Shown piece after piece: positions 40,221 to 59,173 of a DNA stretch of 64,000 nucleotides (position 1 is the first letter of the stretch; each line of letters opens with the position of its first letter). The stretch spans positions 62,001 through 126,000 of the IMG/VR virus record IMGVR_UViG_3300050821_002957; one strand, 5' to 3'. Made by a program: the position numbers and the translations under genes. Under the pieces are notes generated by a model. That model saw nothing but the letters and a program-made list of their open reading frames with translations. It had not been told where the DNA came from and searched no databases.

Positions 40221-40237
40221 GCACATATATAGTGGTG

Positions 40238-44687: not shown

Positions 44688-44762
44688 TGGAGCGAAGAGT
44701 GGGAGTCGAACCCACCTACACTTGATTGGCAACCAAGGGCACAGCCGCTATACCATCCTCGC
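44688..44762 (-). tRNA. tRNA-Gly(GCC)
   Basis: Cloverleaf; anticodon loop TT-GCC-AA; U73; encoded CCA. Confidence 0.93.
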
Positions 44763-45128
44763 ATACCTACGCTTTCGACCTTTGCCTCTATTCAGGCTAC
44801 CATAAGTCGGCGTCAAACTATCACAACAAGGACAAAGCAATTCCAAATTTGACTCTGATGAATCTTCCGAATTGCCATCGATATGATTCACAACGAGAGG
44901 GATCTTCCCAGTCGTAGGATTCACTTCTGCCCACCCACACTTACAACATTTTGAGTCATACTTCTCGAACAAGTAGCGCCGCACATGAGCACTAATTTGT
45001 TCACTCACCATCGAGCCAGATTCCTCTCCCCGTTTCCACCTTGCGATGTACTCTGTGAATTGAAATCTCTGCTGACAGCGGTAGCTACAATAGACATCCG
45101 CTGCTCTTGTACAGGGCGTGCGTAGCAC
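44748..45128 (-). CDS. HNH endonuclease (start uncertain, possibly decaying)
   Basis: CCKCG...LVVNHIDGN..D....NL.LLCP.C; stop codon lies inside tRNA-Gly(GCC). Confidence 0.8.
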   Translation of the reverse strand: MLRTPCTRAADVYCSYRCQQRFQFTEYIARWKRGEESGSMVSEQISAHVRRYLFEKYDSKCCKCGWAEVNPTTGKIPLVVNHIDGNSEDSSESNLELLCPCCDSLTPTYGSLNRGKGRKRRYARMV

Positions 45129-45148
45129 CGTTTAAGACACGGCAAAAT

Positions 45149-45223
45149 TGGAGCGGGGTACGAGAGTCGAACTCGTCTACTCTTACTTGGAAGGCAAGGG
45201 CACAGCCGCTATACCAACCCCGC
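45149..45223 (-). tRNA. tRNA-Gly(TCC)
   Basis: Cloverleaf; loop CT-TCC-AA; CCA. Confidence 0.93.
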
Positions 45224-45231
45224 AATAAAAT

Positions 45232-45534: not shown

Positions 45535-45574
45535 GAGGACCATAGTACCAAAACAAAGGGTCTATGTCAAGAGC

Positions 45575-45790
45575 CTACTTGATCCATCGAGCGGCTGGCT
45601 TTGGATGGGAATCCCGATATTGTCTGCGCCACTCAGCTTCATCTGCATCCGTCGCTGGCTTCATGACAACGTTTGTGCATCCGCAGACGTTCAGAAAACA
45701 TCCGCCAGCGATCAACGTCTTTCGAGCTTCGTCCAGCGAATGGATCAAATCTGGCTGATCACGTCCAGAAACTTCAATCAAAAATTTCAT
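45575..45790 (-). CDS. hypothetical protein
   Basis: MKFLIEVSG...; ATGA overlap. Confidence 0.55.
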   Translation of the reverse strand: MKFLIEVSGRDQPDLIHSLDEARKTLIAGGCFLNVCGCTNVVMKPATDADEAEWRRQYRDSHPKPAARWIK

Positions 45791-45987
45791 GGCTCTCGCT
45801 TTCGCAAACCCAATGTGAGAAAATGTCCCAGGCCAACCCACATGACTTTCGAGTAGTGAGCGTATCCCTTTGCATGAGTCCCCATGATCAAGTTCGTCAA
45901 AAAAGGGAGAACGAGCATGACCCCAAGAAATGCGAAGACCCAATACAAAATATGATAAAGTAGTAGGCCGAAGCCGATCTGAAGCAT
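45787..45987 (-). CDS. small membrane protein
   Basis: Hydrophobic 66 aa; GGAG Shine-Dalgarno. Confidence 0.55.
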   Translation of the reverse strand: MLQIGFGLLLYHILYWVFAFLGVMLVLPFLTNLIMGTHAKGYAHYSKVMWVGLGHFLTLGLRKREP

Positions 45988-46014
45988 AATAATCTCCAGT
46001 CCAAGAATACCTTA

Positions 46015-47004
46015 CTACTCACCGATTGTCAAGCATTTTTGCGCCGTGATGGAATTGAACGAAGCGGCTTTCTTCACGATGTATGTACCCTGCTCGGTAA
46101 CAATTTTTCCGGTCTTCTTGTTGGCCGTCTTGATGTAGCCGTAGTCGTGATACGTGCTGCCGAATTCCTTGAAGCGCAATTCGTACTGAACACGGAACGG
46201 GTCCAAGTAATCAGCGATAACATACTTCAATAGTTCATTGCCTTCTGCATCAAACACGTCCCAACGAACATGATTGTACATCGTGACGTTTAAAATGTCC
46301 TTGAACTTTTGCGGCGGTTCGTTAAACAGATTGACTTCTTTCACCACCGTCTTCACAATATCAATAGTAATGATGTCAAGAGCCGCCAAGTATTCGACCA
46401 CTTCGGTGCGAAAATCCTGGTTCTCTAACATGTCATCGACCACTTCACCGATCACTGGGATTCCAAGATTTGCAAATTTCTTCAAATAATGGATGCGGCT
46501 TGGCCGGTCGATCAGTGCCTCGGAGACATTCATCGTGTTGGCTGTGAGAACGAACAGACGCCTGGAAGGTGCATTCAGTGCTCCATCCATGATTGCCAGC
46601 AATGCATCAGACTTTCCAAAAATTTTCTCGTACTCATCGATCATCACAACGACTTCCTGATCGATGTAACTGAGGAAGTTGATCAGATCCGCACCTTTGT
46701 TGTAGTCCTGCGCCACCAAGATTACAGGTAGCTTGGAGTAGTTGCAAATCTGTTCGGCTTGGACGGTCTTGCCAGTTCCCTTGAGGCCGCACAACATCAC
46801 ACCAAGATTTCCCGTCTTGGCTTTGAACGATTTGATGACTCGATCAGGAAACCCATCACTACCGTAGAGCTTGTACGGAAAGACAAATTCTTCCTTCATC
46901 CTATCGAGATACATTGATCCAAAAGGACCGTATTCCAGAGTGTAGACGCCTACCGGCAATCTCTCTAGCTCTTCGCTCTTTTCAAAAAACCATTTTGTGA
47001 CCAC
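46015..47004 (-). CDS. AAA+ ATPase
   Basis: Walker A GLKGTGKT; Walker B VMIDEYE; sensor 1 LTAN; DRPSRI arginine finger. Confidence 0.9.
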   Translation of the reverse strand: MVTKWFFEKSEELERLPVGVYTLEYGPFGSMYLDRMKEEFVFPYKLYGSDGFPDRVIKSFKAKTGNLGVMLCGLKGTGKTVQAEQICNYSKLPVILVAQDYNKGADLINFLSYIDQEVVVMIDEYEKIFGKSDALLAIMDGALNAPSRRLFVLTANTMNVSEALIDRPSRIHYLKKFANLGIPVIGEVVDDMLENQDFRTEVVEYLAALDIITIDIVKTVVKEVNLFNEPPQKFKDILNVTMYNHVRWDVFDAEGNELLKYVIADYLDPFRVQYELRFKEFGSTYHDYGYIKTANKKTGKIVTEQGTYIVKKAASFNSITAQKCLTIGE

Positions 47005-47021
47005 ATGTGTTCTATTCTCTC

Positions 47022-47471
47022 TTATTTTCCGGCGTTGTCAAGCAACTCTCGGATTTTTTCTGGCACAAGTTTCGGGTCCAATACTATCATCCGGCTAGGA
47101 AACTGAAGAGTCCCCTTTCGCAGGAGTGACGGTTCGTCATCTGGTGACCAATTATCGTTCATTTCTACGCCCTGTACTGAGATTCGATAGTCGGCAGTAT
47201 CATAGTCTTCGTAAACGTTTTCTTGAGTGACAGGATCACGCCCTTTCCATCGCCGTGAGGTTTTTGGTATGACCTTAAGTGCCAGCACCTTGCCTAACTG
47301 GAGAGCGGCACACCGTCCTAGAGCGTGTCCATAGACGATGATTGAACCAATCTCAACCTTCTGCCCGATCTTATCGAAAACATCCGGTGCCTCCTTTTCC
47401 GGCTTGATTTCGTCTACTTCCTTGGCTGTAATCTCTAAAATTTTGTGGACTTTCCGATGGTCGAGTTTCAT
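47022..47471 (-). CDS. hypothetical protein (SH3/YopX-like)
   Basis: D..GQ.VE.G..IVY motif. Confidence 0.65.
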   Translation of the reverse strand: MKLDHRKVHKILEITAKEVDEIKPEKEAPDVFDKIGQKVEIGSIIVYGHALGRCAALQLGKVLALKVIPKTSRRWKGRDPVTQENVYEDYDTADYRISVQGVEMNDNWSPDDEPSLLRKGTLQFPSRMIVLDPKLVPEKIRELLDNAGK

Positions 47472-47827
47472 ACTCTTTTCCGCACTACAATGACGTTAAT
47501 ATCTGCTGCCATTGACTTTGGATCATTCATCTTCGGAATGTCAGCGACTTCTTTGTACCGACCCAGGATCTCACCGTCGTCGGTAATCACGATGTAATCC
47601 TGTTCCCATCCCAAGTCTTTAATAACCGCCTGGAGAGCAAACGACAGCGTGAATGGATCGACACCCATAAACTTACGAGAGATTTCTTTGACGTTAGCTT
47701 CATGGACATCATCGTCCACAAACCATCGGATAATCTTCTCGTATGCTTCTTGAATCTGCTTGTATTCGGTCTCTTCATCGACCTTTTTGAGCTTGGTGAA
47801 AAAGTGGTCAATTTGATCTTGGGTCAT
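47468..47827 (-). CDS. hypothetical protein
   Basis: Leaderless ATG 6 nt after extended -10 TGG-TACAAT. Confidence 0.65.
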   Translation of the reverse strand: MTQDQIDHFFTKLKKVDEETEYKQIQEAYEKIIRWFVDDDVHEANVKEISRKFMGVDPFTLSFALQAVIKDLGWEQDYIVITDDGEILGRYKEVADIPKMNDPKSMAADINVIVVRKRV

Positions 47828-47845
47828 CAATTTATTGTACCACAA

Positions 47846-47882
47846 AATACAAAACGGGATGGTTCCGACACCATCCCGTTCG
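47846..47882 (-). terminator. intrinsic terminator after the MVP gene
   Basis: AACGGGATGGT/ACCATCCCGTT stem followed by TTGTATTT. Confidence 0.8.
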
Positions 47883-47906
47883 ATCAAACCAGAACGAAGA
47901 AAGGAA

Positions 47907-50495
47907 CTACTTCGATACTGCTTTGACTTTGCTGAGGTTCGCAATGTTGGAAACCATGCCTTCGAGAGGGGTTCCAGCGAACATCTGAGTGAGCGTACCG
48001 GAGAGGCTTTCGCCACGAACGATGGACAACGGAGCCAGATGCTCTGCAATCTTCTCGAACATGCCTTCTTGTGCCATTCCGACCAGAGCTTCGACCAGCG
48101 CCGGTTGCACAGACTTCATGCGTACATCGCTTGCCTTGGCTTCTTCGACCAAGAGACTGATCTTACGATCCAGTTCTTGTTGAGCGACCGCCTGCTTGTG
48201 TTCGTCAGCAGCTTTGGTCGTTTCCAGATACAACGCCTGTGTTATTTTGGCGATTTCGGCTGCATCTTGCTCGCCCTTCTTGCGGAGAACAGAAGCAGCA
48301 TTTTCAGCTTCGATTTGTGCCCGATTGTTAGTAGCAGAACGAGCAACAGCATCAGCAGCGATCTTATCTTTCATCTCTGCTGTGATTGAATATTCCGTTT
48401 CAATCTGGCGTTGAACATTCTCTTTGCCCTTGACGAGCGTGAGTTTGTTTTGAGTACGTTCAAGTTCGATGGCTTCCGAAAGAATGTCTTGGCGAGACTT
48501 GGAAAGCATGTTCGCCACTTCATTGTCTCTGACCGTAATCGTGATCAATTCCAAATCGTAGACAGTCATGCCGTTTTCGGAGAAGTGCTTGAGAGGCCGT
48601 TCGCTGGTGGTTGCCTTCGTGCCCAGGACAGTATCCCGCAGAATGTTCGCTGCGTTGCTGTAAAATTCCTGGACGCCGATGTTGCGAACAGCATTGCCAA
48701 TCAGAGAGCGAAGATGATCAACCATGTACTGGACATAATTGTCAACAGAGAACCACTTGTTCTTGTCGGCTTCGTCGAACCGCACAAGATACTTAACCTG
48801 GATATCGACATTCACCAAATCCTGAGTCTTCAGGCTGATAATGTCGGACACCGGATTCGAGATGTAACGCAGATACGCCGTAGGCATACGAGTGTCATTG
48901 TTCTTCGGCTTGCCCTTCGACAAAGACAGACGTTCCAGACCTTCGTCGTATTGCAGAAGAACAGTCTGTGGACCAACGACAGTGCGCCGGTCACCTTTGC
49001 TGTTTACGACTTGAACTGCAAAACCAGACCACGGTGAAATACGAACTGCACCGTCGTACTTGGTGTTGAGCGTAATGGTGCGTGGTGGCGTGTACTTCGT
49101 ACCACGATTCATCACATCGCCAGCGAGACCCTTACCAACAGCTTCACGAACCGGATCGGAATACGAAGCTGCCATGAACGACCGAGTAGACATACGTGTG
49201 TCTTCCAAGGCCGATTCCAGGCCACGATAACTAGCCGCCGCAGGAGCAGCGCCGCCAGCATTGCCGTAGAAATTACCAGGATTAGCGTCACGAAGTTCAC
49301 GATTGATGTCCAGAACTTCTGCATTGCCAGGATAGTACAGTTCACATTCGCTGTCGCTTAACGCACGACGAACTACAACTTCCTTACGAGGGTCGGGCAA
49401 GAACATTCTCGGCCCTTCGACAAGGTTTACTTCGCCGGTCTCACGATTCAGAACATAACGACCTTCACCGGCAGGAATTGCAACGGCGAATGACTTTGCG
49501 AAACCGCCGTACATAATCGTCGAATGCTCTTCACGAGGATAATAAATCGGTTGATCTTCGCCCGTAATGAAAAGTTCTTGACCAGCGGTGTACTTCGTTC
49601 CGCCTGTCACGGTGCCGTCTTCATTGGTCACGCCGCCTTCGACATAATCGGCAATGACTTTGATGTGCATACCAGTGGTCGGCTGCAATTCTTCCGCACG
49701 AAATTTGCGAGCGCCGTCTTTGGTATAGAATTGCTGAGTGGGAGTCGGGAAAACTACATCGGGACCGATCTTGTATTCCTTGTTCCCGCTTTCACCCAAC
49801 AAGATAGCGTATTCAAGGCGTTCGAGCGTCACAGCATCACGAATGTACTTGCTGTTTTCGTCGGTTAGAACTTCGACGCCGGTAGGAGGGATATAAAAGG
49901 CAACGGCAGTTCCCTTGATAACCAAGAGTTGCCCGGTTACCAGAGTGTCTTTGTTGATGCCCAAGACATTGGTGGTTTCGACGTTTGTAGTCGTATCGTC
50001 AGTGGTTGCGCCCTTGACGACAGACTTGTCCCAATTTGCTTTTGCAGCTTCGTCGTCATAGACCCTAACCATCAAATACTGATTACTGCGAAGATGGTGG
50101 CCTTTGATGACAGTTGCGACTTGACCCGGCCACAGTGCGAACGACTTCGGCCCAGGAAGGTTTTCAATTTGGCCCATCTTGAGCGAGCCAACGGTCATTG
50201 TTTCGGTCTTGCCTGCTTCTGGCTGCTTACCAGTGGATGCAGGGTTTTCCAGAACCACATAACTGCCCTTCGGGACCAGAATGTCGGTTTGGATTGCGGT
50301 TGCTTGGTCTCGTGCGGGAACGAATTTCTTTGAATCCGCATTGTACGTTACGAGTTGATCGGTGTTGCTGAGTGACGACTTGTACGGCCCACAGTACGTG
50401 TTAATGTTGCCCTTGGTATTGTCTTGGACATACGCAAACACGCCTGGAGGAAGCACTAACTCAGTATCACGACCTTGCTTATAGTCTTCTGCCAT
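47907..50495 (-). CDS. major vault protein (MVP) homologue, full length
   Basis: Vault repeats (LPPGVFAYVQDNTKG...GP; IPAGEGRYVLNRETGEV..V.GP; AVQV......RTVVGP..V.L...E....LSLS.GKPK); shoulder (D.I..KT.D...FSV.NYV......RS.I..AV......EF..N...I.R..V.G, F.ENGM.V); long cap helix. Confidence 0.85.
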   Translation of the reverse strand: MAEDYKQGRDTELVLPPGVFAYVQDNTKGNINTYCGPYKSSLSNTDQLVTYNADSKKFVPARDQATAIQTDILVPKGSYVVLENPASTGKQPEAGKTETMTVGSLKMGQIENLPGPKSFALWPGQVATVIKGHHLRSNQYLMVRVYDDEAAKANWDKSVVKGATTDDTTTNVETTNVLGINKDTLVTGQLLVIKGTAVAFYIPPTGVEVLTDENSKYIRDAVTLERLEYAILLGESGNKEYKIGPDVVFPTPTQQFYTKDGARKFRAEELQPTTGMHIKVIADYVEGGVTNEDGTVTGGTKYTAGQELFITGEDQPIYYPREEHSTIMYGGFAKSFAVAIPAGEGRYVLNRETGEVNLVEGPRMFLPDPRKEVVVRRALSDSECELYYPGNAEVLDINRELRDANPGNFYGNAGGAAPAAASYRGLESALEDTRMSTRSFMAASYSDPVREAVGKGLAGDVMNRGTKYTPPRTITLNTKYDGAVRISPWSGFAVQVVNSKGDRRTVVGPQTVLLQYDEGLERLSLSKGKPKNNDTRMPTAYLRYISNPVSDIISLKTQDLVNVDIQVKYLVRFDEADKNKWFSVDNYVQYMVDHLRSLIGNAVRNIGVQEFYSNAANILRDTVLGTKATTSERPLKHFSENGMTVYDLELITITVRDNEVANMLSKSRQDILSEAIELERTQNKLTLVKGKENVQRQIETEYSITAEMKDKIAADAVARSATNNRAQIEAENAASVLRKKGEQDAAEIAKITQALYLETTKAADEHKQAVAQQELDRKISLLVEEAKASDVRMKSVQPALVEALVGMAQEGMFEKIAEHLAPLSIVRGESLSGTLTQMFAGTPLEGMVSNIANLSKVKAVSK

Positions 50496-50538
50496 AGTTG
50501 CTTTCCTTTTGAACAGCTTGAAAATCGGCTGCTCCCCA

Positions 50539-50568
50539 ACTATAGCTCTTCATCCAAAAAAATGTCAA
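50539..50568 (-). promoter_or_regulatory. sigma70 promoter of the MVP gene
   Basis: TTGACA-18-TATAGT; AAAGGA Shine-Dalgarno before the ATG. Confidence 0.75.
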
Positions 50569-50631
50569 CTGAAATTTTTCGCTAAATGCAAGATTCTAAT
50601 GATACATCTAGATTATTAGATGCAACTAATT

Positions 50632-50778
50632 ATGAACATCACCGATCTGCACTTTGAGATCGGGACGCAGCGAAACGTGCATGGCAGGTTCTTCGACGGT
50701 ATAGTGATCGTCATCCTCTGTGGTACTTTGGATCTGTACCGCAAGTACTATAATCGCATCCTTCGGGAGTACCTGTAA
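50632..50778 (+). CDS. 48-aa hypothetical protein divergent from MVP
   Basis: MNITDLHFEIG...; preceded by GATACATCTA and TAGATGCAACTA boxes. Confidence 0.4.
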   Translation: MNITDLHFEIGTQRNVHGRFFDGIVIVILCGTLDLYRKYYNRILREYL

Positions 50779-50927
50779 CTCTTTTCTAAGTTGAGCTACG
50801 GTCATTTCCTAATTGTTTTTAAACTCCGGTCGATGAGACTATTTAGTTATGCATACCGAATATTGCGACAACGGACACCTTTGTGTATTCCAAGAAGACG
50901 GAGCGCCGGTAATGATTTTAGAAAAAC

Positions 50928-51293
50928 CTATAGATTTTCTAATGTTATTAGGGGTGGATCAAGCAATTTGCACCGACTCGTATCCACCAGAAACTCTTGT
51001 TCTTTCGGAGCACCGTTCAATTCCAAAAGAGTGTCCAGACGAGAAAAGTCCGTCCAAATCTCACCAGGATATGACGGGTGAAGCGGAATCGTAATACCCT
51101 GTTGCTTTAGACAATCCAGATACGTGTAGCCACCAACGAACGTGTGCCAATAGACGCCTCGCCTCGGATCTTTGATGATGAGATAACAATCTTCGTCTGT
51201 CTCGCCATATCCAATGCAGCGACCCAAATCAAAACCCATCAAAATTGGTTCGTTGAAATGGAGCTTGGCTTCGTCATGAAGATTCTGTTGCAT
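50928..51293 (-). CDS. conserved phage hypothetical protein
   Basis: RCIGYGE...DCYLI...WHT.VGG motif. Confidence 0.65.
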   Translation of the reverse strand: MQQNLHDEAKLHFNEPILMGFDLGRCIGYGETDEDCYLIIKDPRRGVYWHTFVGGYTYLDCLKQQGITIPLHPSYPGEIWTDFSRLDTLLELNGAPKEQEFLVDTSRCKLLDPPLITLENL

Positions 51294-51634
51294 TAGCAGT
51301 TTCCGTGCGGCTGATCATCATCTAGTGAAGGCGACAACCAATCAAAAACGTATCGTACAAAATCGTCGGCGCTGTGTGTATCGTTCTTTTGGTCGTATGC
51401 TTCACTCAACTGAATCAACTGAGGGACTGAAATGTATTGTTGCATTTGACCTCTTTACTTATGATCGTCTACAAACATATTCAAAACTTTACTGTACGCC
51501 GGGAGTGTTATTTGATACCACTTGTCCCGATGGTATTGTGAGAGGTTCGACCAACCCGGAGCGTCCTGTGCAAACGTGTTCCGATGTTCCTCGTATGTCA
51601 ATTCGGCATAAGTGTAATCCTTGTCCATAAAATT

Positions 51635-51722
51635 TGGCGGAAGGAGAGGGAGTCGAACCCTCAAGCCCTTTCGGAACGACTCTTTTCGAGAGAGTCCCCG
51701 TCACCCATCGGTGTGCCCTTCC
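51635..51722 (-). tRNA. tRNA-Ser(CGA)
   Basis: ACTCT-CT-CGA-AA-AGAGT; long V-arm; G73; CCA. Confidence 0.9.
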
Positions 51723-51724
51723 AT

Positions 51725-52165
51725 TTAAAAAATTCCTAAAACCTTCTGGCGCTTTGCTGGTGCTTGGGACGGATTTTCCAATTTCTTCTTTGCTTCGGCC
51801 TGCCCTTTTTGAAGTCGATCAAGAGCCGCTTTGGTCTCTTGAAATTTTAACTCAGCATCGTCCATGCGCTTTTGTAGCTCATCTCGTGTCGCCTCGTGCT
51901 GACCAATGATCACATCACGATTTGTATTTCCTTCCTTGATCAAAGTTTCACGAGTTTTTTCCATCTCTACCTGGACAACTTTCGGAATCGATTTAATACT
52001 TCGATCCATGTCATCCGCAGCCACGAACAGCGAAATAACAAGAAAAACAACAATGAAAATCAGAACCGATGCCATTACTGCCGGGATTACATAAAGATAA
52101 CGCCCAATCAGATCATCGATACTAACAACAAGATTTCTCCAGACATTCAATAGCCAGCTTCTCAT
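51725..52165 (-). CDS. TM plus coiled-coil protein with late promoter
   Basis: CTAAATA then ATG at 52165; one TM segment then a coiled coil. Confidence 0.6.
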   Translation of the reverse strand: MRSWLLNVWRNLVVSIDDLIGRYLYVIPAVMASVLIFIVVFLVISLFVAADDMDRSIKSIPKVVQVEMEKTRETLIKEGNTNRDVIIGQHEATRDELQKRMDDAELKFQETKAALDRLQKGQAEAKKKLENPSQAPAKRQKVLGIF

Positions 52166-52173
52166 GTACCTAT

Positions 52174-52458
52174 TTAGTGTTTGAGAATCCAATAATGGTT
52201 ACACCAACCGTGAAGATATGACCGACGAGGCTCAGGGGCGTAGCTGTAATGAGCATCACTCCATCCGACCTTCATATACCGATTGGCAAGCTCGGCCTTG
52301 TCGTTTGTTTTGAGACCGTCACCAACTTGCTTATTGAGAAGAATAGAAATGCTACCACTGCCACCAGAATAATCCAATAAATAAGCATCGATGAAATGTT
52401 CCAAATCATCGACCAATTTTTTGTTGTACTTCGGAACGCTTTCAGGACTTGTTGCCAT
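52174..52458 (-). CDS. hypothetical protein
   Basis: 94-aa ORF in the tRNA-interspersed operon. Confidence 0.6.
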   Translation of the reverse strand: MATSPESVPKYNKKLVDDLEHFIDAYLLDYSGGSGSISILLNKQVGDGLKTNDKAELANRYMKVGWSDAHYSYAPEPRRSYLHGWCNHYWILKH

Positions 52459-52783
52459 CTACCACCCACTTCCCCGGCTGATACGAATTCTTTGATTTCG
52501 GATCAATGAAAACGATGTTGACTCGCTTCGCATTCGAGCCGCTGCCACAAAGCACATACTTTACGCCTTTGGAGTCGATCTTCATGCGAAATCCACTATG
52601 CGATTTTTGCAAAGAGCGCAGTCGAGCGTGCTTACCTTTACATCGGTTTTCATAGTATTCCATCACAATCTCTGCTGCCCAACCAGATGCTTTCGACGAA
52701 CCACAACTGATTTCCAGCGGACTTTCGCAGTCAATCTCCCAGCCGTCTTTCTCGAACATCTTGAGGGCTTCAGATGACATCAT
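52442..52783 (-). CDS. hypothetical protein
   Basis: GWEI.CESPLEI...S.ASG.AA motif. Confidence 0.65.
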   Translation of the reverse strand: MMSSEALKMFEKDGWEIDCESPLEISCGSSKASGWAAEIVMEYYENRCKGKHARLRSLQKSHSGFRMKIDSKGVKYVLCGSGSNAKRVNIVFIDPKSKNSYQPGKWVVDGNKS

Positions 52784-53013
52784 AGGTATTGACTCATTAT
52801 GTCCACGCCGTCAGCAATGAGGCGCATACCATCATCAATATGCTCGACCGCATCGTCCATCGAATTTAGAATGTCTTCCAAATCGGAAACCAGCGCCCGG
52901 AGCTTGTCACAATCATCTGTCAACTTGACCTTCATTTTTTCGATAGCTTCAAGTTGCTTCAATATTTTACTGCGTTGCTTTGCAGTCATCTTCGGCAAAC
53001 GCTCGATTCGCAT
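52780..53013 (-). CDS. coiled-coil hypothetical protein
   Basis: AAGGA Shine-Dalgarno; MRIERLPK... Confidence 0.6.
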   Translation of the reverse strand: MRIERLPKMTAKQRSKILKQLEAIEKMKVKLTDDCDKLRALVSDLEDILNSMDDAVEHIDDGMRLIADGVDIMSQYL

Positions 53014-53027
53014 AATTTCCTTTATTT

Positions 53028-53118
53028 TGGCAGAGGGAGTCGGAATTGAACCCACGCATCCCTTTTGGAGATGGCCTCCCGCTTCCAACGGGGCACATTA
53101 CCACTCTGTCATCCCTCT
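53028..53118 (-). tRNA. tRNA-Ser(GGA)
   Basis: Loop TT-GGA-AG; long V-arm; G73; CCA. Confidence 0.88.
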
Positions 53119-53121
53119 GTA

Positions 53122-53322
53122 TTATACATCTTCATGGTTTACTGTCAACGTGCATGGAACCACTTTGCACTTCTTCCAACGATTTGCACATGCCGACGCC
53201 GTATTCTTCTTGGAAAAGATTTTGGCGTCTTCTAGCGGCACCATACGATAGCTACTACAATGAAGCCAACGATTCATACTATGGTTCCAGACGACGTAAA
53301 CTTGATGCTTGACGTTCTTCAT
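53122..53322 (-). CDS. hypothetical protein
   Basis: 66-aa ORF filling the inter-tRNA gap. Confidence 0.55.
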   Translation of the reverse strand: MKNVKHQVYVVWNHSMNRWLHCSSYRMVPLEDAKIFSKKNTASACANRWKKCKVVPCTLTVNHEDV

Positions 53323-53328
53323 AAATTT

Positions 53329-53419
53329 TGGCGGAAGGTGGAGGGATCGAACCTCCGCATCCTTTTTGGGGCTGGCCTCGGTTTAGCAAACCGGCACATT
53401 GCCACTCTGTCAACCTTCC
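53329..53419 (-). tRNA. tRNA-Ser(GCT)
   Basis: Loop TT-GCT-AA; long V-arm; G73; CCA. Confidence 0.92.
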
Positions 53420-53425
53420 GTATTT

Positions 53426-53743
53426 TCAATCAAATTCTTTGTTCACAGAATACATGAACTCTAAAAAATCGGCCCAATTCATCTTGATCGACAACTTTGA
53501 TTCATCGACCCATTGAGCATGTCTACTACCTTTCTTCAACAGGTACATCCATTGTGATCCCAGAATACCCATGTCGTTCGGTTCAACTTCTACCGCCCAT
53601 CCATGCAGAATACACCACCTGTACACACGAAGAAAAATATCTTCATGCCTAGACAATGCAAATTTGAACGACGAAAGGAACGCCCAGGCCCTTCCGATGC
53701 TCGTAAACAAGACCGCCGCCAAAAATGCAAGTGCGTACATCAA
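53426..53743 (-). CDS. hypothetical protein with hydrophobic N-terminus
   Basis: 105 aa, overlapping start. Confidence 0.55.
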   Translation of the reverse strand: MMYALAFLAAVLFTSIGRAWAFLSSFKFALSRHEDIFLRVYRWCILHGWAVEVEPNDMGILGSQWMYLLKKGSRHAQWVDESKLSIKMNWADFLEFMYSVNKEFD

Positions 53744-53961
53744 ATGTCTGATGCCTTTCGTTGAGTCAAATAGTTCCGCTCGTGCTCTTTCAAATAAGCA
53801 CCGTCGATACGATTTGCAAAGACCGACTTTACTTGCCAGCCATCTTCATCCTTGAGACGCAAGTATTTATCGAGAACAGCGAACTGCTCGGGAATCCACG
53901 CAATCTGTGAGATCGTCCCCTTGGTCATCGTACATTGTCTAAAAAATTGTTGCTGTGCCAT
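53740..53961 (-). CDS. hypothetical protein
   Basis: QC...K.....AWIP..FA...R.ASDI motif; TGATG coupling. Confidence 0.6.
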   Translation of the reverse strand: MAQQQFFRQCTMTKGTISQIAWIPEQFAVLDKYLRLKDEDGWQVKSVFANRIDGAYLKEHERNYLTQRKASDI

Positions 53962-54146
53962 CACACTTTCACCAAACTTTCCAGCACCCAACCCCGAATG
54001 CCATTTAATCGTGCCTCGTAGATAGGAGCATAACCGGGTAACAAAGGTTCAGCATTGTTACGAAAAACTTGTCCCGGCTCTAGAAACACTTCTTTACTGT
54101 CTACGATTGTACCATCCCAATCTGTGTAAACTTCTTCAAGCCTCAT
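53961..54146 (-). CDS. hypothetical protein
   Basis: 61 aa, coupled to neighbours. Confidence 0.55.
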   Translation of the reverse strand: MRLEEVYTDWDGTIVDSKEVFLEPGQVFRNNAEPLLPGYAPIYEARLNGIRGWVLESLVKV

Positions 54147-54543
54147 TTAGAACCTTTAAATTCTTGTGATACGTCATGTGCTGATGAGCCTTTTCGGTTC
54201 CTTCAATCGGCCAACCACTTCCTACTTCAGTCGCCCAGCCAGGAGGACAAATCCACTTGTTACAATGTTCATCAAAGAACCAACCTTCCTTAAGCAATTC
54301 TTCGGCCATACGCTGCTCACTCAACTGTTTCTTCCAGGAGTCCACAAGCGCCATATGCTTCCGAATCCAACGCATGAAAAAGATGCCCTTGTCTTCAGCA
54401 CGAAAAATTCCTGTGCCGGTATCAGAAGCGGCGACCGGGAATTCAAATCCGTCTGCCGTCTTGTACCACAGTTCTCCCTCTCGGAAATACTGGAATGTCA
54501 CGTTCTGTTGGACTCTCTCTTTCAATGTCATATTCACTCCCAC
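54136..54543 (-). CDS. conserved phage hypothetical protein
   Basis: V.F.Y.R.G.LWY.T..GF.FPV...D.G...F...DK...FMRWIRK motif. Confidence 0.7.
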   Translation of the reverse strand: MGVNMTLKERVQQNVTFQYFREGELWYKTADGFEFPVAASDTGTGIFRAEDKGIFFMRWIRKHMALVDSWKKQLSEQRMAEELLKEGWFFDEHCNKWICPPGWATEVGSGWPIEGTEKAHQHMTYHKNLKVLNEA

Positions 54544-55178
54544 ATAATGCCACCACCATTCAGGTAGATGTCCGTATAAACTTCTTGTTCTTTCGCTCGC
54601 AACGCCTCGTCAAAATCTCTGGCGATCTGTTCCTTTATTTCTTTCTCTGCCTGCTTTCGTGTCTCAATCTCCAAAGCGATCCTCTTAAATGTTTCAAACT
54701 CGCTCTGCTGAAGCTCCGACTTACTCATCGGTGGACTCGGCTTCCGGTTCCCAATTTCAATGGCGATCTTCCGTAACGATTCAAATTCGCTCCGCTTCAT
54801 TCTCATGGTCGGAGTAATTTGGATGATTTCGTCGGGATCTTCAAGCTCTATCGCCACCACACGGAAAATTTCTTCTCGTTTCAAATTCTCCAGCATCTCA
54901 ACGAATTCTGCGTGCTCTCCAGCTTTCCTGCCGCATGTCGCACACAATCTAGTGTCTAAGCTAGGGAAAGATGACTGATCGTCATAATCAAGAAGTAGAC
55001 AATCACAGGCTTTCATTCTAGCCTCCTTTATTTCCACTTCGGTGTTCATCGGAGTCGCCAAACAAATTCCACGATGATGACATTGATCCCAGGTCGGGCA
55101 ATTTACCTGTCCCTTTGCGTCGATACAATACTTTCTCAATTGTTTTCCTTTTACATCTGGAACAACGGAGTCACCCAA
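54534..55178 (-). CDS. hypothetical protein (start uncertain)
   Basis: Internal repeat SEFESLRKIAIEI / SEFETFKRIALEI. Confidence 0.55.
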   Translation of the reverse strand: MGDSVVPDVKGKQLRKYCIDAKGQVNCPTWDQCHHRGICLATPMNTEVEIKEARMKACDCLLLDYDDQSSFPSLDTRLCATCGRKAGEHAEFVEMLENLKREEIFRVVAIELEDPDEIIQITPTMRMKRSEFESLRKIAIEIGNRKPSPPMSKSELQQSEFETFKRIALEIETRKQAEKEIKEQIARDFDEALRAKEQEVYTDIYLNGGGIMWE

Positions 55179-55525
55179 CGTTCAACCTGATACCTAGCAA
55201 AAACTACTGCACCGATCACTCTAATATTCGTCTGTGATTTTTCTTGAACTTCTCTACCATATTGTCTCATCGATCCGCCCGTTGTCCAGACATCATCGAC
55301 AATCAGTACAGTACTACTTCCCGGCGTCCAATATTTTTGCATTTTCTCGGCCAACTTCAACCCACCCCTCGGGACACCTTCACAGTAACCAAATGGATCT
55401 AGCTTCTGAAACAACAGGTACGCAATACACGTCCAATCATCGTCAGTTAGCGCATCACATTCAATTTTGTACGACGCTTCCATGCCACTTGTCAGCCGAA
55501 AACTTCCCATCTGAAAAAGATTCAT
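55151..55525 (-). CDS. type I phosphoribosyltransferase (orotate PRTase-like)
   Basis: G.F.L.SG; GVPRGG; PRPP loop VLIVDDVWTTGGSM. Confidence 0.85.
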   Translation of the reverse strand: MNLFQMGSFRLTSGMEASYKIECDALTDDDWTCIAYLLFQKLDPFGYCEGVPRGGLKLAEKMQKYWTPGSSTVLIVDDVWTTGGSMRQYGREVQEKSQTNIRVIGAVVFARYQVERWVTPLFQM

Positions 55526-55619
55526 CTCACCTTCTCCACGGCTTCGGCGCAATGATGATCAACACCAAAAGTATCGTCCAGAAAAACAACAAAATTGCAT
55601 CATCTTCTCTCATAAATTT

Positions 55620-55704
55620 TGGTAGCCAAGGACGGACTCGAACCGTCACGTCTTTCGACAACGCATTTTAAGTGCGCCGGGTCTGCCAGTTCCCCCACTC
55701 GGCC
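55620..55704 (-). tRNA. tRNA-Leu(TAA)
   Basis: GCGCA-CT-TAA-AA-TGCGT; V-arm; A73; CCA. Confidence 0.92.
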
Positions 55705-55707
55705 ATG

Positions 55708-55920
55708 TTATTTGATGATCTCGAATGGTGACAATTTATCCATTCGTGGACCCATCAAATTCTTTTGCATCCATTCGGGATCAGCAGCCATTTTCATTTC
55801 GACCAACTGATACACACGAAGCGCACTGATGATCACACGTTGCGGCGACAATTCTTTATCAACCGCCAGACCCATCAACACGCCAGCTTCACGCTCTTCA
55901 AAATCAACTGTGACTTTCAT
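55708..55920 (-). CDS. small RHH-like protein
   Basis: MKVTVDF...LA....SP..VI..AL pattern. Confidence 0.5.
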   Translation of the reverse strand: MKVTVDFEEREAGVLMGLAVDKELSPQRVIISALRVYQLVEMKMAADPEWMQKNLMGPRMDKLSPFEIIK

Positions 55921-55926
55921 AAAATT

Positions 55927-56012
55927 TGGTGGGCAAGGTGGGAGTCGAACCCACATGTCCTTACGGACGGTGGCTTTTGAGGCCACTGCGTCTGCCATTC
56001 CGCCACTCGCCC
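55927..56012 (-). tRNA. tRNA-Leu(CAA)
   Basis: GTGGC-CT-CAA-AA-GCCAC; A73; CCA. Confidence 0.93.
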
Positions 56013-56329
56013 AAACTTTTTAGTGCTCGTCGGTACGCACAGCAGCTACAACTTTCACTGCTACGCTTTCCCAGGCGGCTTTGTTTTGATCCGACAGTCT
56101 TAACCACGGACAGGTCAATCCCACGCCTGCTGCAAATGCGTCATATGCGATTTCACCCAAAGTTTTCATACATCATCTCCTGGATCAAATCTAACACATC
56201 CACAGCCATCAATCAAGCAGGGAAGATCGCACGAGCCACACATACAACACATTCGATGCTCGTCATTCCGATGTCCACACCGAACGCACAACAGCGCCCA
56301 ATATTCTTCAACCGTTTCCCACTCAGGCA

Positions 56330-56521
56330 TTATCCTTTCCGTATGCTAAAGTACCCAGGACCAAATTTTCCATTCAACACGTCAAGAATTTCATTCAACG
56401 AAACCGGCTTCCCTCGAAAATCATGACGCTCACAACTACATCCAAAGCAACAAGAAAATCCATTGCCGGGATAATCGTTTAGATGTATTTCCTTCGTCCT
56501 GTCAAATACTATTGCTTGCAT
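56330..56521 (-). CDS. hypothetical protein
   Basis: GAGGA Shine-Dalgarno, 63 aa. Confidence 0.55.
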   Translation of the reverse strand: MQAIVFDRTKEIHLNDYPGNGFSCCFGCSCERHDFRGKPVSLNEILDVLNGKFGPGYFSIRKG

Positions 56522-56539
56522 ACTTCCTCTTCAAAATTT

Positions 56540-56623
56540 TGGTGGCCCCGGAGAGATTCGCACTCTCACGTCTTTCGACACTGGTTTCTAAGACCAGCGG
56601 GTCTGCTGTTCCCCCACAGGGCC
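56540..56623 (-). tRNA. tRNA-Leu(TAG)
   Basis: CTGGT-CT-TAG-AA-ACCAG; atypical T-loop TGCGAAT; CCA. Confidence 0.9.
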
Positions 56624-56630
56624 AAAATCA

Positions 56631-56936
56631 TTAATCGTAGCTCGAAAAATCTACTCGAAGCCTCTCGAACTCGATATCCTGCCACTTCAAATTCGACAAA
56701 TCCGTCATAGATTCACCGAAGCTCACATCACAATTACATGAGCATCCACCTGAGTGGCACGAAAAAACCATTCCTTCAGCATCTACACCAATGCCTTCAT
56801 AGCAATGGTGGCCGTAACCCTCGTCCCAATTGTTGATCTCTTCTACGATGACCAACTCTTTTTCAGAACCATGATCAATAAAGGTGCTCTTCGGCAACTT
56901 GCCATAGTTCTTCTTCACATACGTCTGTATCGTCAT
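56631..56936 (-). CDS. hypothetical protein
   Basis: GAGG Shine-Dalgarno; GCSC motif. Confidence 0.55.
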   Translation of the reverse strand: MTIQTYVKKNYGKLPKSTFIDHGSEKELVIVEEINNWDEGYGHHCYEGIGVDAEGMVFSCHSGGCSCNCDVSFGESMTDLSNLKWQDIEFERLRVDFSSYD

Positions 56937-57693
56937 ATTCGTCTGCCTCCGAATCGTCAAATAGCTTTTCGTGTACTTCACCCAACTTTCTCTCCAATGC
57001 CGCTTCAGACCGGAGCCAACGAGTTTTTACTCCATGACAATTTGAACAGCGAATCCTAAGATTCTCAAGTTCATTATTCATAGGATTACTATCAATATGA
57101 TCCAACTCAAGCGGAGCCGGATATCCTCTCCAGTCACTAATTCCACAATCCTCACATTTTCTTTGCTTGATACCTTCTTGTATCAAACGTTCTCGCAAAG
57201 CCGCTGAACTTATTGTGGAACCAATACACAAATATTCTGTAATTGCTTTTCGTTTATACGGCGGTTTCTCAATAAAATGAGAATGTTCTACCCCCAGTTC
57301 TATAACTCTACGACGCAATTTGTTAAAATTGTTATTTCCTGGCTGGATCTTAACCAACGTACACAATTCTAACCATGTCTGTGATGCAGCTACCAATGGA
57401 ACCAAATATTCCTTTGTATATTTTCTCTTCGCACCCAGTGACTTAATAAGCGCCGCATCTAGATGTTCAAAAGAAATCCCAAAAAATTTAGCACGCCCTC
57501 GAAGATAGGTATACCGAGAACCACACACCTGCACTCCCAAAACTAAGCAAACTTCACGCCACGTTTGATTGCCAGAAATTGCTCTACTCAATTCATCAAA
57601 AGAATATTTACGATTACGTGTGTGGTAACATGGTTGACACGTTTTCGCTTTTCCTGTTGATATGATCCTCCCACAATGCTGACATGTATTCAT
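56875..57693 (-). CDS. HNH homing endonuclease with tandem N-terminal DNA-binding repeats
   Basis: CEDCG..DW.G....LELDHID.N..NN.LENL...C.NCH; two KY(S/T)...L...QTW.E.C repeats. Confidence 0.88.
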   Translation of the reverse strand: MNTCQHCGRIISTGKAKTCQPCYHTRNRKYSFDELSRAISGNQTWREVCLVLGVQVCGSRYTYLRGRAKFFGISFEHLDAALIKSLGAKRKYTKEYLVPLVAASQTWLELCTLVKIQPGNNNFNKLRRRVIELGVEHSHFIEKPPYKRKAITEYLCIGSTISSAALRERLIQEGIKQRKCEDCGISDWRGYPAPLELDHIDSNPMNNELENLRIRCSNCHGVKTRWLRSEAALERKLGEVHEKLFDDSEADEYDDTDVCEEELWQVAEEHLY

Positions 57694-57729
57694 ATCAGCA
57701 TTTAGACACCTAATTTCAGATGTCAAATA

Positions 57730-57815
57730 TGGTCGCCGAGGACGGATTTGAACCGTCACGTCCTTGCGGACACTAGGCCCTCAACCTAGCGTGTCTGCCG
57801 TTTCACCACTCGGCG
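57730..57815 (-). tRNA. tRNA-Leu(GAG)
   Basis: CTAGG-TT-GAG-GG-CCTAG; A73; CCA. Confidence 0.93.
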
Positions 57816-57850
57816 AAAAATGTGCGGGAGCAATGGCTCAACCGCTAATG

Positions 57851-57926
57851 TCAGGAAGGTGAGATTTGAACTCACGAATTTCTCCAATCCGAATGGAGTG
57901 GGGCAACCAGACTCCCCTTCTTCCTG
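57851..57926 (-). tRNA. tRNA-Pro(CGG) with A37, A8 and no encoded CCA
   Basis: CTCCA-TT-CGG-AT-TGGAG; C1-G72; A73. Confidence 0.82.
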
Positions 57927-57930
57927 AAAA

Positions 57931-58021
57931 TGGACCTGAGCATGGGCGGTGCTGTCCTAAGACCCACCATGATTCTCCAGCACCGTGTTTGCTGGCGGCA
58001 TTCCTTTATGCCTACATCAGG
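57931..58021 (-). ncRNA. tRNA-like RNA with expanded T-loop and CCA end
   Basis: Acceptor CCTGA(T)G/CTCAGG-T-CCA; D-arm GGCAT/ATGCC; arm CCAGCA/TGCTGG; T-stem CATGG/CCATG enclosing 21 nt. Confidence 0.7.
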
Positions 58022-58106
58022 ATTTAACTCGGAATGTTGGTAGACCGTTCGGGTAGAAATCTATCCCAACGACGGTCCCTTACTGATTTCATAACCAACA
58101 TAAAAA

Positions 58107-58198
58107 TGGCAGAGGGTAGAATAATCGAAATCCCATCCGGCTCATCACCGGAGCGACGGTTTTCAAGACCGTTGGCACACCAAGCGCCCGTACCCTCT
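58107..58198 (-). tRNA. tRNA-Ser(TGA), can fold as an 8/4 acceptor/T-stem tRNA
   Basis: ACGGT-CT-TGA-AA-ACCGT; AGAGGGTA/TACCCTCT; GGAT/ATTC; G73; CCA. Confidence 0.85.
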
Positions 58199-58205
58199 AA
58201 ACTCG

Positions 58206-58367
58206 TTAAATGTCGTATGCACAACTGCGTTCACAATCAGGACAACAATTACACATCGTCACAGAGTTGGGATGAATTTCTTCGTCAAATGGGCAGGGAT
58301 GTAACTCGACTGTACCCTCATGACCACACCCACTCGGATGCGTACAATAATAATTGTTATCAGTCAT
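58206..58367 (-). CDS. Cys-rich small protein (start approximate)
   Basis: AAGGAAG Shine-Dalgarno; HPCPFDEEI....CNCC.DC...CA.DI motif. Confidence 0.6.
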   Translation of the reverse strand: MTDNNYYCTHPSGCGHEGTVELHPCPFDEEIHPNSVTMCNCCPDCERSCAYDI

Positions 58368-58386
58368 ACAACTTCCTTTCAAACTT

Positions 58387-58463
58387 TGGTTGCCAGGATG
58401 GGACTCTCCCTTACGGGCCGACGATCTCAACGTTGTGCGTCTGCCAAATTCCGCCACCCGGCA
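58387..58463 (-). pseudogene. tRNA-Leu(GAG)-like gene lacking the 5' half of the T-arm
   Basis: Intact acceptor, D, anticodon and V arms and CCA; the V-arm is followed directly by AGAGTCCCAT with no GGTTC. Confidence 0.7.
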
Positions 58464-58469
58464 ATAAAC

Positions 58470-58848
58470 TTGTGGGAGCTTTTCACTCCACTCGACTATT
58501 CTGACACATCAGTACAGCTACCCTGCTTACGGTCGTTACTCTGAGCCGCCGTAAGAACAAATTTAAATGAGTACGAACAAATAATCGAATAGTCGGATTA
58601 ATACCGCTGCGTCTACCATTCCGCCAACACTCGAAAATTCTGCTTTCGCATGTCGAGTGCCCTGGACTTGAACCAGGACGCCCCAGAGGGACGGCGGTGC
58701 CTGATAACCAACTACCTACGGCTCGTACTCAAACTCATTGGCTTCGGGTAATGACGACATAAATGCAGTCTTCGCCTCTCTTCGATCCCATCAGAGTTAT
58801 CCTGATGAAATGCCTCACGCCGCTTATTAGACGGCCTACATCAAACTG
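58470..58848 (-). ncRNA. structured RNA containing a circularly permuted tRNA-Leu (core 58601-58704)
   Basis: 3' half (anticodon 3' strand, V-arm, T-arm, acceptor, A73) precedes the 5' half (acceptor, D-arm, anticodon 5' strand); the flanks base-pair. Confidence 0.8.
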
Positions 58849-58850
58849 TG

Positions 58851-58931
58851 TAGCCAAGGAGGGACTCGAACCCTCAACCCTTGCGGGAACCGCTTCTGAG
58901 ACGGCTGCGTATGCCATTCCGCCACTCGGCT
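58851..58931 (-). tRNA. tRNA-Leu(CAG) with A37 and no encoded CCA
   Basis: GCCGT-CT-CAG-AA-GCGGT; V-arm; A73. Confidence 0.9.
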
Positions 58932-59097
58932 AAAATGAAGGTTGCCCAGTCCACAATACAGGTCATACCTACAATCCCTCTAGCTTCGATAAGCGGAGCA
59001 CACTTCGCTCGACGCTTGATGTCAGCCTACTTCGATTCGCACGAAGAACCCCTGAATCCAAATCAGGAAGGATACTCTTTCCCCATAGACTGAAACT

Positions 59098-59173
59098 TGG
59101 TCAGCGTGCTCAGATTTGAACTGAGAATTTACCGCCCCAAACGGCAAGTGATACCAGATTTCACCACACACTG
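59098..59173 (-). tRNA. tRNA-Pro(TGG)
   Basis: TGCCG-TT-TGG-GG-CGGTA; C1-G72; A73; CCA. Confidence 0.92.

Follow-up and report, generated by a model that had tools for sequence, protein, structure and literature searches.

The 64-kb stretch of DNA analysed here (hereafter, the window) corresponds to positions 62001-126000 of the IMG/VR contig IMGVR_UViG_3300050821_002957 (405,631 bp), and the sample type of the source metagenome is soil. On the minus strand of the window, one gene lies between tRNA genes and almost certainly encodes a genuine homologue of eukaryotic major vault protein (MVP). The function of vaults is still unexplained about 40 years after their discovery. As shown in Table 1, the gene is preceded by a promoter-like sequence and followed by a terminator-like hairpin, and the predicted protein can be divided into vault repeats, a shoulder, a long cap helix and a C-terminal region. 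The gene is that of a huge soil phage, T4-like and about 405 kb in size. In an earlier note on this DNA, the gene had been described as a stand-alone gene for a full-length phage-encoded MVP; the reading frame is indeed intact and uninterrupted, and the length given there is correct.

The sequence similarity to MVP is clear in the C-terminal half of the protein. The Pfam model MVP_shoulder (PF11978) matched residues 548-655 (model positions 4-116 of 118) with an E-value of 6.9e-22. Because the score was 78.1 bits against a cut-off of 25, this match is far beyond chance, and the same model matched all 21 family members that were scanned. Furthermore, the Pfam model Vault_3 matched residues 493-534 (E-value, 2.2e-7; 31.3 bits against a cut-off of 28.8). 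Thus, two models were above their cut-offs in the Pfam comparison that the earlier note had suggested as a check. When the protein was compared by phmmer with the sequences in PDB, residues 491-791 were aligned collinearly with residues 465-786 of rat and human MVP (E-value, about 1e-14), and major vault proteins were the sole matches. A profile prepared from 96 diverse homologues was also collinear with rat and human MVP, with an E-value of 1.8e-39, and gave an additional weak match of 13 bits between positions 230-352 and residues 294-409 of rat MVP (repeats R6-R8). Across these 96 homologues, 29 columns are invariant. The peptide comparisons with MVP made in the earlier note were reproduced by HMMER, in which residues 503-531 and 581-625 were aligned with residues 479-506 and 561-605 of rat MVP, respectively.

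The structure predicted by AlphaFold agrees with the sequence comparisons. The model was calculated from 96 sequences (predicted local distance difference test [pLDDT], 83; predicted template-modelling score, 0.60) and replaced a model calculated from 21 sequences (pLDDT, 61). When the model was searched with Foldseek, the top 12 matches in PDB were all full-length MVP chains, with E-values from 1e-24 to 1e-32 and template-modelling (TM) scores of up to 0.53 for this elongated protein. Crystal structures of the murine R1-R7 repeats were matched with an E-value of 2e-13 (TM score, 0.56). The next family was that of the SPFH cage proteins, namely flotillin, prohibitin, HflK/C, stomatin and erlin (E-values, 6e-7 to 1e-4). 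Because the MVP chains and then the R1-R7 crystals outrank the SPFH proteins, the similarity is not that of a generic SPFH protein without vault repeats. Thus, Pfam, the profile and the AlphaFold and Foldseek results all agree with the collinear arrangement of repeats, shoulder and cap helix described previously. Given this ranking (1e-32, 2e-13 and only 6e-7 at best for generic SPFH proteins), there is little doubt that the protein is a genuine MVP homologue of the prokaryote type and not a generic Band-7 protein. Some results speak against this reading. The Pfam models Vault, Vault_2 and Vault_4 were not significant in the protein (E-value for Vault_2, 0.11), and searches of PHROGs, PADLOC and NCBIfam with the MVP protein gave no match. 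Repeats 1-8 are supported by the predicted structure and by a weak register shift of about 59 residues in the self-alignment of the protein, and not by sequence profiles.

Table 1. Features of the MVP locus in the window (positions are those of the window)
Feature	Position	Strand	Description
MVP homologue, coding sequence	47907..50495	-	ATG start; 862 amino acids and stop codon; no internal stop
R1-R7-like all-beta array (residues 10-378)	49362..50468	-	AlphaFold strands at 12-375; pLDDT >90
R8-like segment (residues 379-483)	49047..49361	-	Two predicted helices (381-404) and insert 408-462
Last vault repeat, R9 (Pfam Vault_3; residues 484-545)	48861..49046	-	Beta repeat at 492-539 in the model
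MVP shoulder, SPFH-like (residues 546-656)	48528..48860	-	Pfam MVP_shoulder at 548-655; alpha/beta at 547-655 in the model
Cap-helix equivalent (residues 657-795)	48111..48527	-	One continuous helix at 658-794, about 137 residues (AlphaFold)
C-terminal short helices at the cap-ring position (residues 796-862)	47910..48110	-	Predicted helices at 798-827, 831-838 and 845-854
Sigma70-like promoter	50568..50539	-	TTGACA, 18-nt spacer, TATAGT; 11/12 matches; about 43 nt upstream of ATG
Shine-Dalgarno-like box AAGGAAAG	50501..50508	-	5 nt before the ATG at 50495; read from the sequence
Intrinsic-terminator-like hairpin, then TGTATTTTGT	47881..47852	-	12 bp with 6 G-C pairs and T-rich tail; starts 26 nt past the stop codon
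Palindrome GCATCTAATAATCTAGATG	50605..50623	-	37 nt upstream of the -35 hexamer; directly after the stop codon of a small upstream reading frame
AAA ATPase gene	46015..47004	-	Downstream of MVP
Two tRNA-Gly genes (gcc, tcc)	44688..45223	-	Downstream of MVP; HNH endonuclease reading frame (44748-45128) between them
Twelve tRNA genes (Ser x4, Leu x5, Pro x3)	51635..59173	-	Upstream of MVP; small reading frames and HNH endonuclease gene (56875-57759) interspersed

The N-terminal beta array has the size of about seven vault repeats and is the best-conserved part of the family; with the R8-like segment and R9, the protein would have about nine beta repeats in all. The 55-residue insert in the R8-like segment is predicted to be disordered (pLDDT <50) and is variable in the family alignments. 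R9 ends in the S-x-G-x-P-K motif of the so-called keyhole loop (S526, G528, P530 and K531), and the cap helix, which directly follows the shoulder, can be aligned with rat MVP up to residue 802. Residues 796-862 are modelled with a pLDDT of 50-72 and have no similarity that can be aligned with eukaryotic MVP. In the sequence of the protein, no hydrophobic N-terminal segment is visible. Compared with the MVPs of rat, human and rabbit (PDB 4V60, 4HL8, 9BW5 and 9Z4W), the protein is therefore alike in length (862 versus 861-893 residues), in domain order (beta repeats, shoulder, long cap helix and C-terminal region) and in the G-x-P-K core of the keyhole loop. In contrast, the identity in the structural alignment is only about 16-18%, only R9, the shoulder and the cap helix show similarity at the sequence level, and the disordered insert and the unalignable cap-ring region are differences from the eukaryotic proteins. 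Eukaryotic MVP forms a 78-mer barrel from two 39-mer halves, whereas the window protein is known here from its sequence and a monomer model.

The gene has expression signals of its own, as the earlier note had proposed; at the level of the consensus, both the sigma70-type promoter and the terminator are borne out. The upper end that was given there to the locus, 50568, is the first base of the promoter-like site on the minus strand. In the 64-kb window there are four promoter sites with at least 11 of 12 matches, versus 1.1 on average in shuffled sequences. Moreover, in two diverged relatives (L002 and L004), whose MVPs are 67-70% identical to the window protein, a comparable promoter is found at the same place, 40-50 nt upstream of the MVP start, and in L002 a hairpin and T-run directly follow the MVP stop codon. 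The palindrome GCATCTAATAATCTAGATG is unique in the window (0.01 chance matches expected), and L002 and L004 have a partly conserved version of it at the corresponding site; an operator function is conceivable, as is that of a terminator for the small upstream reading frame. A perfect 12/12 sigma70 promoter (TTGACA, 16-nt spacer, TATAAT) is located at 53120-53148 on the minus strand, directly upstream of tRNA-Ser(gga). Because this consensus promoter precedes tRNA-Ser, the tRNA genes appear to use host-type promoters like the MVP gene. Relative to the homologues at 67-70% protein identity, the proportions of nonsynonymous (pN) and synonymous (pS) differences are 0.18-0.22 and 0.70-0.75, respectively. 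Therefore, the MVP gene is under purifying selection.

The location of the gene between two tRNA clusters and upstream of an AAA+ ATPase gene, which had been described in the earlier note, was confirmed. The 14 tRNA genes (44688-59173, minus strand) correspond to only four amino acids, yet cover nearly all codon boxes of these. The array is flanked by genes for GIY-YIG (40232-40780) and endonuclease VII (61989-62459) proteins; HNH, GIY-YIG and endonuclease VII were the only matches in Pfam scans of the flanking reading frames. At 58594-58636, a sequence like the 3′ half of a tRNA resembles the 5′ part of the tRNA-Leu genes read on the plus strand; it was called neither by ARAGORN nor by Rfam and may be what is left of a tRNA, or a tRNA that is interrupted. 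The order tRNA-Ser, MVP, tRNA-Gly is kept in the two nearest relatives, although the intervening reading frames differ. Among non-redundant loci, tRNAs are found within 10 kb of MVP in 32 of the 65 from phages versus six of the 70 from bacteria, and 208 of the 209 tRNAs near phage MVP are on the MVP strand. ARAGORN calls "tRNA-Pyl", which reads amber codons, in eight MVP-bearing contigs (L041, L042, L044, L057, L061, L065, L066 and L072), a hint that these phages have suppressor tRNAs and possibly recode TAG.

The AAA+ ATPase was considered as a partner of MVP and rejected. It belongs to a generic phage family (PHROG 2376) that is present in hundreds of phages without MVP, and apart from a duplicate contig it adjoins MVP at just one other locus (L070). 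Thus, the link to the ATPase made in the earlier note is unsupported. Conserved operon partners were sought by BLAST clustering of the reading frames within 10 kb of MVP at 78 viral and 80 bacterial loci. The largest family was present at 17 of the 78 viral loci, and none was found at the bacterial loci.

The T4-like nature of the phage is seen from baseplate wedge and hub genes in the window (gp5, gp6 and gp7 types; PHROGs 219, 438 and 430; E-values, 1e-80 to 1e-168). The closest cultured relatives of these baseplate genes are in myoviruses of pelagiphage, Methylophilales and cyanophage types, with about 40% identity. Searches for nearly identical DNA in GenBank phages gave no match to the window. 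Two very long reading frames of 2,261 (23134-29919) and 1,343 amino acids (31547-35578), both on the minus strand between T4-like baseplate wedge genes, presumably encode giant baseplate or fibre proteins.

Relatives of the protein are widespread. A word-indexed protein search gave more than 2,034 relatives with E-values of 1e-5 or less. Many of these had already been named "major vault protein" by the Joint Genome Institute (JGI), and several are encoded on contigs of 370-570 kb. In an exhaustive search of 1.84 billion representatives of 50%-identity clusters, 1,693 clusters were found at an E-value of 1e-3 or less and 752 at 1e-30 or less. In IMG/VR, 243 viral contigs carry an MVP relative. 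Among GenBank phages, the only matches were three records of huge phages, one of which is the record genome of 735,411 bp. In GTDB, which was represented by one genome per species, there are 517 bacterial loci with a relative at 40-44% identity, in Myxococcota, Cytophagales, Riflebacteria, Sericytochromatia, Vulcanimicrobiota and others; an exception in identity is one contig of a metagenome-assembled genome (MAG), at 55%. In a FastTree tree of 145 proteins, the 64 bacterial rows form one supported clade and the phage rows are distributed in several deeper clades. Because the tree was calculated by a fast method and has no root, we do not infer a direction of transfer. The clade of the window protein is viral except for a single 20-kb MAG contig. 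This exception (L079, JAKFUT010000352.1; 55% identity) is from a Candidatus Obscuribacterales MAG; either the contig is of phage origin and was mis-binned, or it hints at the lineage of the host. In BFVD, the 802-residue protein A0A3G5A4K1 of Harvfovirus sp., which is annotated as a "prohibitin domain-containing protein", was matched along about 930 columns of the MVP model (E-value, 2.8e-11); it is possibly an MVP-like protein from a giant virus of eukaryotes.

These numbers show that full-length MVP is a widespread accessory gene of large phages and is more diverse there than in bacteria. The finding is neither unique nor the first of its kind; it extends a known observation and opens no new category. 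Homologues of MVP in bacteria were already known in 2013 (Daly 2013, PMC3762200; Sokolskyi 2019, bioRxiv 10.1101/872010), and a 2023 preprint (Santos et al., bioRxiv 10.1101/2023.11.10.566534) gave an in silico description of MVPs from two human-gut Caudoviricetes as the "first viral MVPs"; it makes no mention of a tRNA, RNA-repair or jumbo-phage context. A predicted vault protein is also encoded by Borgs (PMC12660748). A survey of jumbo phages mentions neither MVP nor SPFH (PMC7824862). Given the 243 viral contigs, the 517 bacterial loci, the naming by JGI and the 2023 preprint, the rarity implied in the earlier note was overstated.

In the clade that is sister to that of the window protein (22 rows; support, 100), MVP is part of an RNA-repair island. 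Directly upstream of MVP in this clade, there is a gene for a 511-residue DUF2828/DUF7788 protein, which matches PHROG 850 ("RNA-binding protein"). In the Atlas, the look-alikes of this protein are TROVE and vWA_Ro60 (scores, 0.92-0.93), a lead from a language model that involves no alignment, and sequence and profile searches against PDB gave nothing significant for a TROVE identity. The island also contains genes for an RlaP nucleotidyltransferase, a cREC domain protein, an RNA ligase, a polynucleotide kinase, a NADAR protein and three metallophosphoesterases. In a reverse search, 258 viral contigs with the Ro60-like protein were found, and when the best 60 of these loci with a sufficiently long downstream sequence were considered, MVP was located no more than 10 kb downstream in 36 of them, mostly within 2.3 kb. 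Scattered repair genes are found near MVP in other clades and in phages of 462 kb and 735 kb. TROVE and SPFH/Band-7 modules are said to have been proposed in 2016 by Burroughs and Aravind as scaffolding cofactors of RNA-repair systems, in a work that reportedly covers RNA-repair modules too. Such modules (RtcB or ATP-grasp ligases, Pnkp, RlaP and cREC) have been surveyed for jumbo phages (PMC7824862).

A small RNA partner was also sought. Rfam found only tRNAs around MVP and no vault-RNA or Y-RNA analogue. A 140-nt tRNA-like RNA beside the Ro60-like gene in contig L059 was considered as a cofactor candidate and rejected, as it is a tRNA-Lys (L059:8047-8189) whose anticodon loop carries an insertion of 68 nt, and close relatives (L073, L074 and L054) have the uninterrupted tRNA. 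The insert contains a T-arm-like hairpin. Such an insertion in tRNA-Lys is also found in L075, L076, L165, L166, L169, L170 and L187, and L164 has about 485 nt at the same site; the extra sequence may represent an intron, or else a small mobile insertion. In two phage contigs, RAGATH-33 RNA (Rfam RF03102) was found above the gathering score (L046:2227-2339 and L073:6150-6278) beside tRNA arrays located upstream of the paired genes for the Ro60-like protein and MVP.

We propose the following role for the window protein. The unmodified host RNA polymerase would transcribe the MVP gene early, as a monocistronic RNA, from the sigma70-type promoter, like the neighbouring tRNA genes. The protein would then self-assemble through contacts of the shoulder and cap helix into a closed, soluble and membrane-free cage, a ring or half-vault, in the infected cell. 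The cage would serve as a scaffold or container for the translation-maintenance arm of the phage, which may comprise tRNAs, repair of damaged RNA and handling of NAD and ADP-ribose. Published descriptions indicate that eukaryotic MVP alone directs vault assembly, and all structural neighbours of the model with an SPFH domain and a long helix (flotillin, prohibitin, HflK/C, stomatin and erlin) are cage complexes. Because MVP alone builds vaults and every solved neighbour of this kind is a cage, we consider it rather probable that the window protein also assembles into a cage. In contrast to assembly, the RNA- or NAD-linked role is possible but on balance doubtful, and rests on the genomic context and partial conservation of the keyhole loop. 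For the compartment proposed in the earlier note, which was suggested to shield RNA or defence factors, the tRNA and RNA-repair neighbourhoods in other phages give circumstantial support.

Several results weigh against a role in RNA maintenance. In Pfam and hidden Markov model (HMM) scans of the window, no gene for an RNA ligase, kinase, TROVE-like protein, PARP or NADAR was found. HMMs were prepared from the neighbours in the sister clade (DUF2828, RNA ligase, polynucleotide kinase, RlaP, cREC, NADAR and phosphoesterases), and even after three iterations they gave no match in the window or in its own clade. Most of the evidence for a linkage to RNA repair is from a single phage clade and therefore represents few independent events. 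The survey of neighbourhood conservation that the earlier note had suggested found no neighbour gene conserved across the family. The enrichment of tRNAs near MVP, as counted in 10-kb flanks, is plausible, and within these flanks the tRNA density is broad, without a peak at MVP. In big phages, tRNA regions are hot spots for accessory genes and homing endonucleases. Therefore, the proximity of tRNAs to MVP may reflect a plastic region and not a shared function. A search of RNA runs gave no run with the sequence of the locus. Furthermore, half of the residues of the human nucleotide pocket are not kept in the window protein, as described below.

Other explanations of the locus were weighed against a soluble phage-encoded MVP cage. 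The metagenomic origin of the sequence, together with the existence of bacterial homologues at 41-44% identity, would fit an assembly or binning artefact in which a bacterial MVP-like gene was misjoined to phage DNA. However, a contig from a second metagenome contains the same 22,586 bp, including phage tRNAs and the baseplate hub, with a single mismatch, and error-free contig pieces from an independent run span the 3′ junction of the MVP gene without differences; therefore, a chimera is very unlikely. The GC content of the gene region is in line with that of the rest of the window, the order of MVP and its flanking tRNAs is the same in relatives at 67-70% identity and the nearest homologues are all on viral contigs. 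Consequently, the chance of an artefact is practically negligible. Authentic phage DNA still leaves room for a virion or assembly protein (head-internal, decoration or scaffolding) encoded beside the baseplate module: the baseplate hub gene is only 7.7 kb away on the same strand, it is within 10 kb of MVP also in L002 and L004, and cage-forming proteins could in principle be scaffolds. We consider this highly improbable, since the MVP gene has its own host-type promoter and terminator in a tRNA array and is separated from the structural genes by tRNAs and endonucleases, other phage clades place MVP in RNA-repair islands and not in structural modules, close homologues are chromosomal in many bacteria with no phage genes around them, and no PHROG structural family matches. 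The MVP cage is thus probably not a part of the virion. The chance is similarly slim that the protein is a generic SPFH/Band-7 scaffold like HflK/C, stomatin or flotillin, which organises membrane microdomains or regulates a protease. The shoulder has the SPFH fold, the Pfam model Band_7 is matched by four of the 21 family members, SPFH cage proteins are significant in Foldseek and the main matches in BFVD are viral SPFH proteins; moreover, SPFH/Band-7 cages share with the window protein a long helix behind the SPFH fold, from which the SPFH proteins build a closed oligomeric cage. However, the MVP_shoulder model (6.9e-22), the MVP chains and the R1-R7 crystals match far better than the SPFH proteins, whose E-values are 6e-7 to 1e-4. 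The SPFH proteins are membrane-anchored and lack an N-terminal repeat wall, whereas the window protein has about 540 N-terminal residues of beta repeats and no hydrophobic N-terminal anchor is visible in its sequence. Neither an NfeD nor an FtsH-type partner is encoded nearby.

The remaining explanation shares the MVP architecture. Human MVP binds NAD+, ADP and ADP-ribose between adjacent shoulder domains via a basic keyhole loop (PMC12280208). A phage shell that binds NAD+, ADP-ribose and related signalling nucleotides at such inter-subunit pockets may act as a nucleotide sponge, which would buffer or sequester nucleotides against NAD-depleting or nucleotide-signalling defences of the host. 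The keyhole core S-x-G-x-P-K is conserved across the 96 phage and bacterial homologues. K531, the equivalent of the diphosphate-contacting K506 in human MVP, is invariant in them, and hardly any variation is seen at G528, P530 and L542. Among the human pocket residues, R504 (as lysine, K529), K506 (K531), R511 (R536) and L517 (L542) are kept, as is P505 (P530), and the equivalent of D521 is N547. In addition, NADAR and cREC proteins, which are tied to the processing of ADP-ribose or cyclic phosphates, co-occur with MVP in the sister clade and are found near the MVP of the 735-kb phage. However, the equivalents of R507, P508, H509, W545, P565 and K573 are N532, N533, D534, V571, D585 and D593, respectively, and because of these replacements the pocket is only partly kept. 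Enzymes of the NADAR or cREC type were not found in the window, and PADLOC has no related model. A nucleotide-binding cage may be regarded as a live alternative within the same MVP architecture, albeit one to which we give a rather low probability.

The proposed MVP cage can be compared with several known systems. The gut-phage MVPs ctOa11 and ct2Ri15 (bioRxiv 10.1101/2023.11.10.566534) are also phage-encoded; they have about 810 residues, are of the bacterial type and are predicted to contain repeats, a shoulder and a cap helix. By their description, they differ from the window gene in their source, which is human-gut phages linked to Bacillota as opposed to a 405-kb T4-like soil phage. The bacterial MVP-like proteins (PMC3762200; bioRxiv 10.1101/872010) have the same Pfam content, are 41-44% identical over the full length and form one family with the phage proteins, but their loci have no conserved neighbour and few nearby tRNAs. 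The Borg vault protein (PMC12660748) is likewise encoded by a giant prokaryotic extrachromosomal element and, by description, is an MVP-like protein predicted to form vault-like assemblies. In contrast, the Borg is an archaeal element and its vault protein co-occurs with histone genes.

The eukaryotic vault particle is composed of MVP, TEP1, PARP4 and vault RNA, and no TEP1, PARP4 or vault RNA was found near the window gene. In the sister clade, MVP adjoins the Ro60-like gene and repair enzymes downstream of a tRNA array, which resembles Ro60 (TROVE)-Y RNA systems, the label Ro60-like being based on a look-alike score and the name of a PHROG. This island mirrors the eukaryotic combination of MVP, TEP1 (TROVE) and a small RNA. 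The window differs from the Ro60-Y RNA systems in that it has none of these genes, and no Y-like RNA was found. A bolder proposal is a minimal vault ribonucleoprotein of large phages, in which an MVP cage, a Ro60/TROVE-like protein and tRNAs or their fragments would form a protected space where RNA is repaired or tRNAs are safeguarded, with a link to NAD and ADP-ribose, and which would counter host defences that cleave anticodons or deplete NAD. The vault of eukaryotes (MVP, TEP1-TROVE, vault RNA and NAD-using enzymes) would be derived from a conflict system of this kind, and the window gene would be its stand-alone cage component in a tRNA array. We think that this proposal as a whole is unlikely.

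Our results show that complete MVP homologues are not confined to two gut phages, as they are present in 243 IMG/VR contigs, among which is the record genome of 735 kb. Concrete leads are provided by the repeated occurrence of MVP within tRNA arrays and by its Ro60/TROVE-like, RNA-repair and ADP-ribose-processing neighbours in one clade. Together, these observations suggest the hypothesis that phage MVP may form a cage that, during conflict, helps to maintain RNA or to handle nucleotides. Should the window protein indeed form assemblies, it would represent a new protein nanocontainer derived from prokaryotes.

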